A stretch of DNA of 64,000 bases from assembly GCA_011109175.1 (NCBI GenBank), contig RDEW01000011.1, positions 1,360,209-1,424,208 on the forward strand. Reading direction: 5' to 3'. Below are positions 46,606 through 55,872 of this stretch, piece after piece. A program made the position numbers and the translations under genes. The notes below the pieces were generated by a model. The model saw only the letters and a program-made list of their open reading frames with translations. It had not been told where the DNA came from and made no database searches. The stretch is from Dicyema japonicum. Lineage: Eukaryota; Animalia; Dicyemida. Numbering within the stretch: position 1 is the first letter of the stretch; each line of letters begins with the position of its first letter.

Positions 46606-48032
46606 TTATAATATTGGCCTTGGAACATTTGATTTGGCTGAATGTCCAGTGTTCTGGGGAGAGCTATGACTAAAAATGAGTGAATCGGACCAACCAGCTG
46701 AATTCAGAGAATTTTTAGTAAAAAAGTCATTATCAGCGCTGAAAAGGTTATATTTGTTGATTTCTTGCGGATTGTAAGCTTTCAGGATATCCTGAGTCTC
46801 CAGGTCGGTCTTCGCCAATAGTTCAAGTTGTAGTGGGGATTGTTGAAGGAGTTGACTGGGAAATATCTCAACAGATTACCGTTTACGAACTGATTGAAGT
46901 ATTCAGGAACCCCAGGATCCACAGTTGAGGAGGTCGCCTCCTCTAGGTAGCTGTATTGAGGATATATTTGTCTACGTTAGTCACAAATTTACTGAGTTGG
47001 AGTGTTCCGAGAAAATGTGTGCATTCCAAATTGGTCGTTCATTTCGTAGTTTGGGAGGGAATATTGATTTTCCGAGACATCTTTATTCATCTTCCCCTCA
47101 CGTCTCCACTTGGCTCTCCGATTAGAGAACCAGACCTAGGATTATGTGATCTAATAATACTTGAATCCTTGCTTCGGGGATCTGCAGTTTCTCGGCTATT
47201 CGCTCTCGAATACTGATGTCCGGGTAATGGGACTTTTGAAACTCTGGGAGTTATTTTGGATGATACCCTCGTCCATGATTTTAAGCTGAATGGCGGAAAA
47301 CGAGGTTCTGTTTCTCTGTGCCTTCTTTTTCGCAGAAACATTAGCCAAAGTCCTGTCTAAGTAGCTCGTGTGAGTATTATTTGTGGAGGAATCGTCAAAA
47401 ATCTGCTGGTTGATCCCCCAATTGTAGTCATTTGGCTGAGAGATTGAATTTAGGGAGTTATTAGCGAAAATGGACGATTGAGTAGAGTTTGAATCTTTAA
47501 TTTTGCTGATACTAAAGTTCCTCAGTACTCTGTTAATGGAAGAGATCTATTTTTAGTAACAACGACAAACGCTGGGGACATTTTCTGAGTTGCAAACTCT
47601 CTCATTGACTAAGCGGTCCCTGATTTCCCATGCGAATATGGATGGACAGTCCCTCTTGTACCTTGCGATGTGTTGAATTACATGAACAGTTGCGACACGT
47701 GGTTTACTCCCACCAATCGTTCAAAACATCCCGTTTCGTGGTATCGACATAAAATCTTGGAGACACAGCCATTGGAAACTTGAAGAATCCTCGATATATC
47801 GCAGGCCCTGGCTCCACTATAAGCCAGCTTGATTATCTCCTGTCTGGTCTTGTTGGGGAGAGGTCTACCATTCACAAAGTTCCCTCCCAACTGATTTGTC
47901 CCATGGTGGCTTTTTCGAACTCTCCGTTTGTCTAAATTAAATGCAAAACAAACTGTCTCTTCCATCCGACGCCGAATCCTGACTTTCCTCGATGACCTCG
48001 TTATGGGGGAAGACTTCGTTCTGTTCACCCAT
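46606..48032 (-). CDS. PAX6: Pax6 (paired domain and paired-type homeodomain); 3' end uncertain (stop at 46782 or 46606); frame break near 47720
   Basis: ATG 48032; introns 47932-47953 (22), 47547-47570 (24), 47244-47266 (23), 47136-47160 (25), 46972-46992 (21). Paired domain [14 protein letters not shown]...[17 protein letters not shown] has the Pax6-specific I42/Q44/N47, then [13 protein letters not shown]. Homeodomain QRNRTSFS...HYPD...[18 protein letters not shown] (S50). Confidence 0.95.
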
Positions 48033-49119
48033 GCCTTAAATAGTAAAACGAAGCATATTAATCGGTGATCGTATTTATTGAGCAGGTAATAATTAACATA
48101 ATCAGTTTTACAGTAAAGTGACTTACAGTGCTGTAGATCTTCCAATTGAATTAATTCAGTTATTTTATGTCAATTCGTTTAGTACGTTTTTCGCTCGATT
48201 TGGTGGCTAATCGACAGAAATTGTAATTCACAGTTTTGAAGGGGAAATTTATTTTGAAGGAGATTTCTCTGTCAAAAGAAGTCACGATTCGCCCAAACCA
48301 CTTCCTTGATTAAGCTGATATTTTAGACTCATGTTGACTGTTTAATAACTATGACAGCTGAATTGCCAATTTAACGCACCGGGGAGCAAAATCTGATGAC
48401 AGAATCATTCACATGCTTTTATTCCCTACGTCAATCAAAATTATTCTGTAACTATAGTTCACTAATCATCATATTTGACAGTCTACTGGACTAAGTTGGT
48501 CTTTCGTCAAATTATTTCCTCGGGCACTCTTTAGAATCCACCAATTATTCCGTCCACGTGACAAAATTGGTCTTCTGATATAGTTTTACCTAATTTTCAA
48601 ACGAAATGGCAGTTCGACGACTAATTTGTCTGTCAGGGAAAAACAGGTCGGTTCTTAGTTGACATAATAACCGTTCAAGTTCAGTTTTTTCTTACAAATG
48701 TGACCTACGGAAGTGACTCAACCTTACCTGCTGAATTAGTCATTTGGGCTTCCTAATCTCCTTCAAATTCAGTATTTCAAATATACACGGAAATGAAACT
48801 TTGAGAAGGAGATGGAAGTTAAAACTTAGTCCGTTTCTTTATTCTCTCATGACGGATACAAACCATGGTTCGTTGAAACTGCGATTCAGAAGACATTGGA
48901 TAACCAAAGTAGCCCAAATAGACGTGTTGAATCCCATCTACTCCAAGTTGAAGAACCCTTAACAGAGATATGTCCCCTGAAATGTACCAAGGGAATTATT
49001 AGTTAAATTATTCTTGATGATTCTGTTCGCTAATCACTTTCACCCCTCTATTTGAGGCCGGACTCTTGAAATCACCAAGGTTTCTTTGGTTGGGGTGGTG
49101 ACGTCGATGGACGATTCTA

Positions 49120-50709: not shown

Positions 50710-51123
50710 TCAGGAGAAATCATTAAACATTTTTTCAGCCGGGATTTGGTTATTGAGATCACTTCCAAGCTTAAGAAATGAAATGATTGCTGCCCGGTCC
50801 TCGTAGTTTAGTCCCTTAATTTTCTTCTTACTCCCTGGAATGTAAGACTTAGGATCCTCCAAGTAGGGGTCCAGCGTGGCTTCACTCCAAATAATATCTG
50901 GCATTAAATTTAAAATAACCCTTTTCTTTGTGGGCTTCAGAAAATGCATAATTTTCGCAAGTCCCGGCCCTTCGACCGAAGATTCCGTTCAAGTTTGGTC
51001 CGTATTTATGGGGACCTTTAGCGTGGATGTTGTGACAGTGGGAACAATATTTGATAAACAAATCACGTCCACGTTTGTAATTATTCTATATTTACCCAAT
51101 TTTATACAAACTAGATCGGACAT
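50710..51123 (-). CDS. Cytochrome c (class I, mitochondrial type), 121 aa, divergent: Lys at the Met80 position
   Basis: Introns 51086-51111 (26 nt) and 50898-50919 (22 nt) give MSDLNNYKRGRDLFIKYCSHCHNIHAKGPHKYGPNLNGIFGRRAGTCENYAFSEAHKEKDIIWSEATLDPYLEDPKSYIPGSKKKIKGLNYEDRAAIISFLKLGSDLNNQIPAEKMFNDFS*. Motifs CXXCH, GPNL.G..GR, W59, YL..PK.YIPG are present. Confidence 0.93.
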
Positions 51124-51217: not shown

Positions 51218-51610
51218 GTGATAGCATAGCGATTAGTGTCGTCGCTCGAGTCGCGATTGGGTACGGGTTCGATTCCCACACAGATATCTACCTGGTTGAA
51301 GGATTTGTTATGCTCTGTGCCCCTGATCAAATCCTAGGAGGCATGAGTTAATCCACTAGTCCCAGAAGACAACCAATGCCTGGTCGGTTGCCAGAAAGGA
51401 TCTCTCTTCCCTACTGTTCCCACAACTGCTGATATGGATGGACTTGTTGCTAAGAAAGGACGCGTCTTACCGGACCAAGGGAACTGAATATATCCTACAT
51501 CACCAGAGCTGGATATAAAAGTGGTGGATATCTGGGAACTTCCTATCTTAGGGGTGCGTTTTTAGTTTCCTACAATCTAGCGAGACTGGGGGTTAATAAT
51601 TTATTATTAA
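51218..51610 (+). mobile_element. tRNA-derived SINE
   Basis: A-box-like TAGCATAGCG, B box GGGTTCGATTCCC, TACCTGGTTGAAGG, body shared with 46030-46290, TAA-rich tail. Confidence 0.7.
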
Positions 51611-53259
51611 TGCAGTAGTATATACAGCATAGGTTACCTGGGATATTTTGAATTTTTGGAATTAGTGAGGATCGGATCTATTAAAAGAACACCTTTAGAA
51701 AATCTAAAAGATCTCAGTTCTTTCCAAAGTACCTCTTAGTTGATTTTACTATACTGGAGGTCTTAGATGACCTTCAATCAGTAATTTTATTTAATTCGAA
51801 ATTTAAGTTATGGCTGACATTTTCTTCTTCGTGGGAGACTTCCTTTTTGGACAAAAATGAGGTTTGACCCTTGCATCATGGTCCAATCCTTGCTTGTATT
51901 TAACTTATCTTACTATCCTCTTGAATCACATGATGCTCTAGCACAACGGTTCTCAACCATTTGTATCCCCATTTTGAAACTTCATCTCCCGTGGGTTAAT
52001 TTAACATGCATTTAACTCGTAGACAAAAATTCTATAATCCAATAATTATTGAATGTGGCTAATGTGATCATTCGAACAGAATATTCAACGTTTAAATCAG
52101 GATTAATTCGACTTGAGTCGAAAATCACCTCAAGCTTTCACTTTGAATAAGAGAGCTGACTCAGCAAGATACGAAGTGGAAATTAAATATTATAGATTGA
52201 GTTAATCGTCCAATTAATCCAAAACTTATTTGAAATTTAATTTCATAAAATTTATTATTTTTGAGGTTTATTAATTTATCTCTTTTGAACAATCAATGAT
52301 TCGCCAATTGTATGGAAAAGCCTTTTTGTAGTAATTTCAGATATCCTCTATGAAGTTTCAAATCCTTCTAATGAAAAGCAACCAAAAGGCAAACAATTGT
52401 TTTCTACTGTATTTTTTGAGAATATTCCCGTTTATATATTTTCCTTTAATTTTTCAGTTTCATTTTTAGACGGATGCATGTTTTGAAATAATACAATATC
52501 CGTGATGACTTCATTTGACAAAGTAGTGCTGCTCATTAAACAATACGACTCTATTCTATCACTAAGACATTTATGATATTTGAAATTTTTTTCACGTTCA
52601 TTAATATTTAGTGGTAGCCATCTAAAAATATTATTTAAATTTTTCAATTATATGTCGCTTATCGTGAGGATGAAAAAAGACAAAGAGAGCAGTTGGTTTA
52701 TTGAGGGACTTTCTTGCAAATCGTAGGGAATGCGTTTCGATCCTGAGAGCAGCCAAAGTTCATAGAGAAATATGTTTAGTAGTTTAACGATTTCAATTAT
52801 ATAGTAATTTCTAATTTCATCGATCAAAAAAAACATATCACCCAGTTGGGCCAATATCGGTGGTTGAGAAACAAACTGCTTTAGCTTTAAAAAGAATGAT
52901 AAATAGAAAAAAGGGAAAAGCCTTCGAACAAGTAACGAATGGGAGAATTGAACCCAGGACCAGTGTTGCAGGCATGGCAATTTACATGGGTTTCAATTCT
53001 AAGTGAGAACACTCACATCACTGTGAGAATTCATCACATAAATCTGAGAAATTTTAACATCACTGCGAGAATCCATCATATCAATTTGAGAAATTTTCAA
53101 AAACAACCAAAACCATAATTTAAAAAAATTAATGAATATAAAACAATTCACAATCAACACTTCCAATTGCTTTGAGACCTTCATCAATTTAAAATTAGTT
53201 AAAATTTTGTAAAAAGTTATTCCTATTTTATTCATTGCGAAGCAAACACTGATGTTTTT

Positions 53260-53987: not shown

Positions 53988-55872
53988 TTAGTTCTTACGT
54001 TTCTTATTCTTTACACTCACTTCTATAAAATTAAAATACACATTCACTGGAATTATAATTTGATGGGTTTAAATCCCCAGTTTTCTGTAATATCCCATCA
54101 ATGACCGTTCTCAGAGCATTGAAGGTCGTAGAATATCTCAGAAGAGTGTCTTTCATAATAAAAGTCAACCAACCATTCGGAATGCCTATCAATTTGATGT
54201 TGGAGGATGACTTTCTGATCTCTTTAAATATCTTCCTTTCCCTCTCACCAATCAGAGAAACAGCCCTTAGCCTTAAAACCCTGATAACCTCCCACTCTTT
54301 GATGCCCTAGCTGTCCTCCCAATACGGTGGATGTACAGTTTCAAAGTTGACGGCATATTATAGTTAATGACCTTTTAATATAACATCAATTCCACAGTTT
54401 CAATGTTATCAACATCCAACCCACGTGCCGCCAAATCAGTGGCTAAAAGGACATTGAATCTTTCAAGTTTGAATAAACTAAGCATCTCACATCGCTGAGA
54501 CTGAGTCAAATCCCCATGAAGTTCCCCCACTGATATTCCAAACAAACCCAAAACCACGTGCAACCATCTCACTGCCTTTTTGGTCCCAACAAAGACGATC
54601 ACCCTTCTTTTAAACACATTTCTCAACAAACCTAGAATAAACTACACAAAGCAACATGCAAGTACAGTCGGACGATCTTTCTCATGTCCCGGCCTAATCC
54701 TAACATACTCCTGACTCAAATTTCCAACAGATTTGTCATTAACAACCACATTTACTGGGGACTTTTGTATAAGGTTGGAAAGTTCACGTGCTTGGTCGGT
54801 CATTGTAGCAGAGAGGAGCATAGTTTGTCTATGGGAGGACAGAGAAGTCATTATAACTTTGATTTGCTCATAAAAGTGATCATCCAACAGTCTAAATAAG
54901 CAAATAACTGTACCTATCAGCCTCGTCTAGAATTAGAACCTCTATGGTTCTCAAATCGACCTTCCTGTTGCTAATTAAATCTATTAGTCGTCCCGGAGTG
55001 GCAATGAGAATGTCTGGGCAGCTCACTGCATCGTTCTGTTGGGGATCAATTGGAAGACCACCTAAAATAACCCACGTGAACCTACCAGTGACAACTGATA
55101 TATTAATCGTCATATATTTGGCCAATTGGGAGGTAACGTGATTGACTTGAATGGCCAGTTCCCTTGTGGGCACTAAAATGAGGACACGAGTAATGTTGTC
55201 GTAGTTCTGTATAAACAGGAGTCTTTCCAATGTGGGAAGAATATAGGCAGCGGTCTTTCCTATTATAATGAGGACTGAAAACCAGATCCAGTGGGTGCTC
55301 GTGCACAAAGATCCCTCCCAGAAAGGGCAATCGGGATGACTTTGGACTGAATAGGAGTTGGAGCTGTGATGGACAAATCATTTAGGGACTTTATAACAAG
55401 AAGAAGATACTTTTAAAAGAGGTCTTGATAGACTAGTCTCCTCAAAGGTGGTAAAGCTCTCGCATACATTCTTACAACCCTTGAATAACCAATAAACAAA
55501 CAGGCAGGGAACCAGTCCTTACTGTCACGTGTAAATCACTGTTTTGGAACCCAACTAACTGAAGATTCTTAAATGAAATTATAAATCAACATTTTCCCGC
55601 TCATTTTTGATTATTGTATCGAGTTCCTGGAAGCACGTGCTTTCTTTGAGCTGAACGTCTTTTCTATCATTTTTTGGGAGGCAGTTTTCTTCCTTAAATC
55701 ATAAAATGATGATTACATTGAAGTCAAATTTAAAATCAGGATTTATATCAGAATCATGATTACTTTCAGAATCCCCATCGATTTTGTATCTCTCACGCTC
55801 TTTTCGTGCATCTACTAGCGAGACTTTCTTCTTTTTTCCGTGTTTGGTTGATTTTTTTGAACCTTGTTTCAT
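53988..55872 (-). CDS. DDX27: DEAD-box RNA helicase DDX27/Drs1, about 13 exons
   Basis: Twelve 22-25 nt GT-AG introns join [115 protein letters not shown], ending KNKKRKN*. Confidence 0.92.

Follow-up and report, generated by a model that had tools for sequence, protein, structure and literature searches.

The 64,000-nucleotide stretch of Dicyema japonicum DNA that we analyzed (the window) encodes, on the minus strand at positions 51123-50710, a 121-residue mitochondrial-type cytochrome c in three exons separated by two GT..AG introns of 26 and 22 nt, and in this protein a lysine occupies the place of Met80. Ligation of the heme iron by Met80 is a textbook invariant of eukaryotic cytochrome c, and cytochromes c that lack it are normally examined only as mutants, at alkaline pH, or in the course of apoptosis. 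The reading that we favor, with a probability of about 0.55 for the statement as a whole, is that this gene (here called the Lys80 copy) specifies a non-respiratory paralog with a closed, low-spin, low-potential His/Lys heme. We consider it likely that the Lys80 copy is a real, old, and selectively retained second cytochrome c, that is, a functional gene. If so, a constrained natural copy in which Met80 has given way to Lys would offer a model of Lys ligation in ready-made form and would suggest that cytochrome c is able to take on a second stable role. The parts of the gene are listed here in window coordinates, with residues in horse numbering.

51112..51123, minus strand: exon 1, ATG plus three codons (MSDL); the junction is deduced from the sequence.
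51086..51111, minus strand: intron 1, 26 nt, GT..AG, phase 0, after codon 4, with no counterpart in the canonical paralog; predicted from sequence logic alone.
50920..51085, minus strand: exon 2, 55 complete codons and the first base of the codon that intron 2 splits; residues 1-55.
50898..50919, minus strand: intron 2 (predicted), 22 nt, GT..AG, phase 1, splitting codon 56.
50710..50897, minus strand: exon 3, the rest of the split codon (G plus AT, Asp), 61 codons, and TGA; residues 56-104 and a 17-residue extension.
50815..50832, minus strand: remodeled distal loop, Ser78-Lys79-Lys80-Lys81-Ile82-Lys83, with AAG (Lys) at 50826-50824 in the Met80 column.
50713..50769, minus strand: C-terminal tail, LGSD...NDFS, with AEKMF at 50739-50725 and its Met codon at 50730-50728.

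The codons of this model add up to the full protein (4+55+1+61 = 121 residues), and exon 1 is the only route to a start codon for exon 2 because an in-frame TAG lies directly upstream of the latter. The gene was searched one exon at a time. Exon 2, which contains the Phe10 recognized by holocytochrome c synthase (HCCS), the heme-binding CSHCH (51046-51032), GPNLNG, and FGR, matches the Pfam family PF00034 with 30.2 bits against a cut-off of 21.3. Exon 3 alone gives no Pfam match, which we attribute to its length because the last exon of the canonical copy gives none either. Against the solved human, horse, and yeast cytochromes c, exon 3 aligns with E = 2e-7, and its ligand loop is placed without gaps (IPGSKKKIKG on IPGTKMIFVG), so the AAG codon sits at the Met80 column and Phe82 has become Ile. 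Gene model and ungapped alignment thus agree with an earlier note on this DNA, which had described an intact 121-residue cytochrome c with two micro-introns, Lys in place of Met80, and Ile in place of Phe82. The Lys80 copy retains CSHCH, GPNL, Trp59, Tyr67, and PKSYIPG, and in its HCCS motif, F-I-K-Y-C, Phe stands four residues before the first Cys, as it does in both the canonical copy and human cytochrome c; what it lacks is Met80 as the sixth heme ligand. Judged by these features, it is a homolog and structural member of class I cytochrome c and not a canonical His/Met respiratory carrier. Its introns, one of them at the ancestral site, and its intact frame set it apart from a processed or decayed pseudogene.

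A genome-wide search with each exon and with the PF00034 profile, covering 67,542,437 bases in 377 contigs, returned exactly two cytochrome c loci, the Lys80 copy and one canonical gene. The canonical copy (G000:C334:1075720-1076078, plus strand; L002:1307-1680) has CSQCH, GTKMVFAG, and Met80. The earlier suggestion of a non-respiratory paralog had pointed to a second, canonical cytochrome c in the genome as the thing to look for, and this Met80 copy supplies it. The intron of the canonical copy (23 nt) coincides in site and phase with intron 2 of the Lys80 copy (phase 1, codon 56), which indicates a duplication at the DNA level and not an origin of the Lys80 copy by retroposition. The two proteins also have in common Ser73 and a derived AEKMF tail. 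In the canonical copy the tail is an 11-residue C-terminal extension ending ...SAEKMFK, which aligns gap-free with the ...PAEKMFNDFS of the Lys80 copy, and EKMF occurs in none of the 154 homologs that were fetched. From this distribution, the tail is a feature of the dicyemid lineage that is older than the duplication, and we propose that the animal's own cytochrome c gene would have been duplicated after the AEKMF extension had been gained. Orthologs with Lys80 in related species, which had also been envisaged, did not appear: searches with exon 3 found none from another dicyemid. A word search with the exon 3 open reading frame gave no candidate in a collection that seemingly contains no dicyemid cytochrome c, a blank that has no bearing on expression, and a full representative search with exon 3 gave nothing above 58% identity and no ortholog, in a set whose clustering at 50% identity could hide one.

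Micro-introns like those of the Lys80 copy are usual in this genome (20-26 nt, the intron of the canonical cytochrome c included), and exon matches in the HCCS and cytochrome c1 genes are spaced by 8-23 nt. The published assembly of Dicyema japonicum (67.5 Mb in 377 scaffolds) has very short introns, with a mean of 38 bp, and the genome is reduced to about 5,000 genes (PMC6736024). A nearby case of tiny introns lies in the window at 54375-55308 (minus strand), where DEAD-box helicase exons (DEAD, E = 4e-22; Helicase_C, E = 8e-16) have very short gaps between them. An open reading frame at 47681-48145 (minus strand), some 2.5 kb downstream of the Lys80 gene, contains a paired-box (PAX) domain (Pfam E = 4e-28) and is an exon of a Pax-type transcription factor. 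Just upstream of the gene, at about 51240-51330, there is a tRNA-like T-arm motif (GGTTCGATTCCC, plus strand); ARAGORN reported no tRNA and Rfam no match in this interval, and the motif may be a tRNA-derived repeat. A U4atac-like Rfam match at 51537-51663 (plus strand) reaches 20 bits where the gathering score is 53 (E = 0.69) and is most likely due to chance.

The replacement of Met80 does not stand by itself. The 36 columns at which four outgroup cytochromes c and the canonical copy show no variation include 26 that the Lys80 copy preserves; the other ten have changed, as L35I, T40A, A43C, Y48F, T49S, N52H, T78S, M80K, V81K, and F82I. Asn52, Tyr67, and Thr78 are described as an "entatic triad" that secures the bond of Met80 to the iron, within a hydrogen-bond network that also includes Thr49 (PMC12188557). 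By this comparison the changes cluster on the network that supports Met80 ligation, and the fold, the heme attachment, and the crevice residues 70-79 are kept. Residues 81, 82, and 83 are Lys, Ile, and Lys; with residues 78 and 80-83 all different, the point made earlier that a single base error is not the explanation holds. His52 (Asn elsewhere) and Cys43, an additional third Cys in place of the usual Ala, at 50932-50934 and 50959-50957 of the window (minus strand), are both near the heme edge. The surface of the protein has changed as well. A ring of lysines (Lys72, 73, 86, 87, and others) docks cytochrome c to complexes III and IV. Lys27, Lys72, and Lys79 are kept in the Lys80 copy, and Lys86, Lys87, and Lys88 are replaced by Asn, Tyr, and Glu; Lys73 is Ser in both copies. 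The net charge is +3 for the Lys80 copy versus +7 for the canonical copy. A functional shift away from respiration, as had been anticipated, is what these replacements suggest, since Met80 and Lys86/87/88, which the shuttle between the complexes needs, are lost.

What kind of heme protein this would be can be projected from known cytochromes. If the Lys80 copy is expressed, as we infer it to be, we predict that the one holocytochrome c synthase of the genome hemylates its product, which would adopt the class I fold. Hemylation should proceed because the spacing from Phe to CXXCH is intact and the genome contains one HCCS gene; the enzyme reads an aromatic side chain at position -4 from the first Cys and accepts C-terminally truncated cytochromes c (PMC4158909). 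Lys80, or a neighboring lysine at the flanking positions 79 or 81, would then bind the iron, so that the "alkaline" conformer would be built into the protein and its potential would lie some 400 mV under the normal value. Lys binds iron more strongly than Met does at neutral pH (PMC7193304), and the potential of a Lys-ligated cytochrome c is about -137 mV (PMC12188557). The M100K variant of cytochrome c550 is more stable and has 20-fold-lower peroxidase activity, as cited in PMC7193304. A natural c-type heme with His/Lys ligation is found in heme 2 of TsdA from Allochromatium vinosum, in which an adjacent Met displaces the Lys on reduction (PMC6879331). With Lys as a competent ligand and with the precedents of c550 and TsdA, a closed, low-spin, low-potential His/Lys heme is the form that we favor. 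The expectation in the earlier note that Lys at the Met80 position opens the heme and raises peroxidase activity runs opposite to this literature, in which Lys is the stronger ligand and the c550 variant is the less active peroxidase.

A protein of this kind could not pass electrons on from complex III to complex IV, a task that would be left to the canonical copy; its own work would be redox chemistry at low potential, outside respiration, in the intermembrane space. The canonical copy presumably supports respiration, and the genome also has a cytochrome c1 gene (G000:C345:201200-202500, minus strand) that is divided into small exons and in which CSTCH and the Met-ligand motif are preserved. 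An apoptosis signal had been listed among the possible roles. An apoptosome role finds no support in the genome, where no NB-ARC (Apaf-1 type) domain was found, a weak negative given the incomplete assembly. The molybdopterin oxidoreductase (sulfite oxidase) domain was likewise not found in the same incomplete assembly, another weak negative, and the two blanks argue weakly against roles with an apoptosome or with sulfite oxidase. Three Erv1/ALR loci are present in the genome.

The strongest competitor, which was the main idea of the earlier note and which we regard as unlikely, keeps the Lys80 copy as a functional paralog and gives it an open heme, either five-coordinate or bound to water or hydroxide, so that it would act as a peroxidase or bind small ligands in the manner of the cytochrome c-2 of Plasmodium falciparum. 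That protein, a divergent and dispensable second cytochrome c, accompanies the canonical copy in the reduced genome of a parasite, and one protein ligand alone binds its ferric heme (PMC10175771). It therefore offers a precedent for a retained non-respiratory cytochrome c with one axial ligand in a setting like that of the dicyemid. The absence of Met80 and the replacement of Phe82 would suit an open heme, and His52 in place of Asn offers a possible distal acid-base residue. In the intermembrane space, where the pH is mildly acidic, the Lys may also be partly protonated; in a yeast cytochrome c variant, the transition from water to Lys has a pKa of 6.5 (PMC12188557). However, Lys80 is itself well able to bind iron and has a further lysine on either side, and Lys at the corresponding position of c550 gives a closed heme with 20-fold-lower peroxidase activity. 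The crevice at residues 70-79 (PKSYIPGSK), moreover, is conserved here, whereas it has fully diverged in cytochrome c-2. For these reasons we prefer the closed His/Lys heme.

A different objection is that the Lys80 copy might have no function at all, and here the comparison of the two dicyemid genes is informative. Over 113 aligned codons they are 50% identical in protein and 55% identical in DNA, with identities of 0.62, 0.72, and 0.32 at the first, second, and third codon positions. The proportion of synonymous differences (pS) is 0.92 and that of nonsynonymous differences (pN) is 0.32, the former being saturated, which precludes a formal dN/dS between the copies. Third positions are thus randomized and first and second positions conserved, from which it follows that the duplication is old and that purifying selection has acted on both copies for most of the time since. 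In a neutral simulation, the ATG, a stop-free frame, and the four splice dinucleotides persisted together at d = 0.1 in 10% of cases with substitutions only and in 0.1% with indels, and at d = 0.2 in at most 1.6%. Long neutral drift of the Lys80 copy is excluded. The two copies have not evolved alike: identity to four outgroup cytochromes c is 40-53% for the Lys80 copy versus 62-70% for the canonical copy, and the sites at which only one of the copies agrees with an outgroup number 3-7 for the Lys80 copy versus 12-27 for the canonical one. The much faster evolution of the Lys80 copy that these figures point to would also fit a long period of relaxed constraint.

We think it improbable, on this evidence, that the Lys80 copy is a silent or recently dead duplicate, without function, whose frame is still open by chance. 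Its strongly accelerated and asymmetric evolution and the loss of the axial ligand and docking lysines are what such a duplicate might show, and loss of function within the last d = 0.05 or so is compatible with the open frame, since in the simulation with substitutions only an open frame persists at d = 0.02-0.05 with a probability of 0.3-0.6. Against this stand the saturated third positions beside conserved first and second positions, the lack of any stop or frameshift, and the intact ATG and all four splice dinucleotides. The 26 of 36 invariant sites that are kept tell in the same direction, the other changes being mostly conservative or confined to one functional patch, as does the retention of the gene in a genome of about 5,000 genes. 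A functional and selectively retained gene remains our preferred account. Eight sequencing runs were found for the stretch, none of them on record as RNA. Its sampled words were present at 98-100% in four runs of one study, at 51% in a small 2017 run of Dicyema japonicum from a second study, and at 8% in three runs of a second organism. The 2017 run could be a transcriptome, and the runs of the second organism could come from a relative with which a part of the stretch is conserved.

The Met of the tail had been proposed as a relocated ligand, acting as the sixth ligand either always or through a switch from Lys to Met on reduction. The Met-bearing EKMF tail is indeed present, and its Met is the sole Met of the Lys80 copy besides the start codon. 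TsdA heme 2 demonstrates that a Lys-to-Met switch on reduction occurs in nature, and the Lys80 homologs of the alga Spirogloea muscicola also carry a short extra tail containing Met and His. AEKMF is equally conserved, however, and aligned without a gap, in the canonical copy, which has Met80. The tail must accordingly be older than the loss of Met80 and have some other role, and it did not arise to replace the ligand. The switching Met of TsdA, furthermore, adjoins its Lys, whereas here the two are 36 residues apart. We therefore rate ligation by the tail Met, which would have to be a co-opted residue of a pre-existing tail, as very unlikely and continue to favor a lysine as the probable ligand. 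An artifact, be it an error of sequencing or assembly or DNA of the host or of a contaminant, is hardly credible, given that five adjacent residues differ and not one base, that words of the stretch recur in runs from two studies, and that micro-introns and the AEKMF tail, common to the canonical copy, mark the organism's own gene.

Lysine at the ligand position is not confined to the dicyemid. In 317 domain alignments from the 154 fetched homologs, the ligand column has Met in 303 and Lys in 6 of the 14 exceptions, which makes Lys the commonest substitute in a sample that is biased because the query itself has Lys. The homologs with Lys80 comprise a nearly identical pair from the streptophyte alga Spirogloea muscicola (P0135 and P0151, GTKKDMEG), which have the short extra C-terminal tail with Met and His already mentioned, one protein of the green alga Ostreobium quekettii (P0153, GTKKPVPG), and three proteins of bacterial type (P0100, P0046, and P0089); GSNKRLKG is a further loop sequence among them. 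P0100 and P0135 are 44-47% identical to the dicyemid exon, and none of the six (P0135, P0151, P0153, P0100, P0046, and P0089) has the AEKMF tail. Low identity and the missing tail indicate that these homologs arose independently and are not orthologs of the Lys80 copy, and the green algal examples suggest that the same solution arose more than once. Our search of the open-access literature yielded no description of a eukaryotic cytochrome c that naturally has Lys80 and nothing on the Spirogloea, Ostreobium, or bacterial-type Lys80 homologs. We suggest, tentatively and at less than even odds, that the dicyemid protein is a natural, genetically fixed "alkaline-form" animal cytochrome c, permanently ligated by His and Lys and retained for non-respiratory work next to the canonical carrier in one of the smallest animal genomes, and that it forms with the algal and bacterial Lys80 homologs a recurrent functional class that has not been described. 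On this view the AEKMF tail of both copies would be a second dicyemid-specific addition to a protein that is otherwise highly conserved.

The place of the Lys80 copy among known systems is best seen by comparison. With the canonical cytochromes c of human, horse, yeast, and its own genome, it has in common the class I signature, CXXCH, the HCCS-recognized Phe, the conserved Gly and Pro residues, Trp59, Tyr67, and the crevice residues 70-79, and with the canonical copy of its own genome it further has in common the phase-1 intron in codon 56 and the AEKMF tail. It differs from them in Lys80, the altered residues 81-83, His52, Ser49 and Ser78, Phe48, the loss of Lys86-88, and an extra intron after codon 4. 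Engineered or alkaline Lys-ligated forms, such as yeast T49V/T78V/K79G (PMC12188557), have a Lys amine as the sixth ligand, which in the dicyemid copy is only predicted; the yeast variant and the dicyemid copy are alike in that the Thr49/Thr78/Asn52 network is weakened in both. These forms, among them Paracoccus versutus c550 M100K (cited in PMC7193304), are man-made or pH-induced, whereas in the dicyemid Lys ligation would be genetically fixed in a natural animal gene. TsdA has natural His/Lys ligation in common with what we predict here, but it is an unrelated bacterial di-heme enzyme, and the dicyemid copy has no adjacent Met. The closest published analog of the dicyemid copy is Plasmodium cytochrome c-2, whose sequence marks it as an HCCS substrate and which is not expected to work in the respiratory chain (PMC10175771). 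The two proteins have parted from the canonical design in reverse ways, as cytochrome c-2 keeps Met80 and has a diverged crevice at residues 70-79, and the dicyemid copy keeps the crevice and has exchanged Met80 for Lys. By these differences cytochrome c-2 is an analog and not a fellow member, and the duplications that produced the two are independent. Taken together, the dicyemid and Plasmodium cases would suggest that in the reduced genomes of parasites a divergent cytochrome c with a task outside respiration is retained beside the respiratory one.
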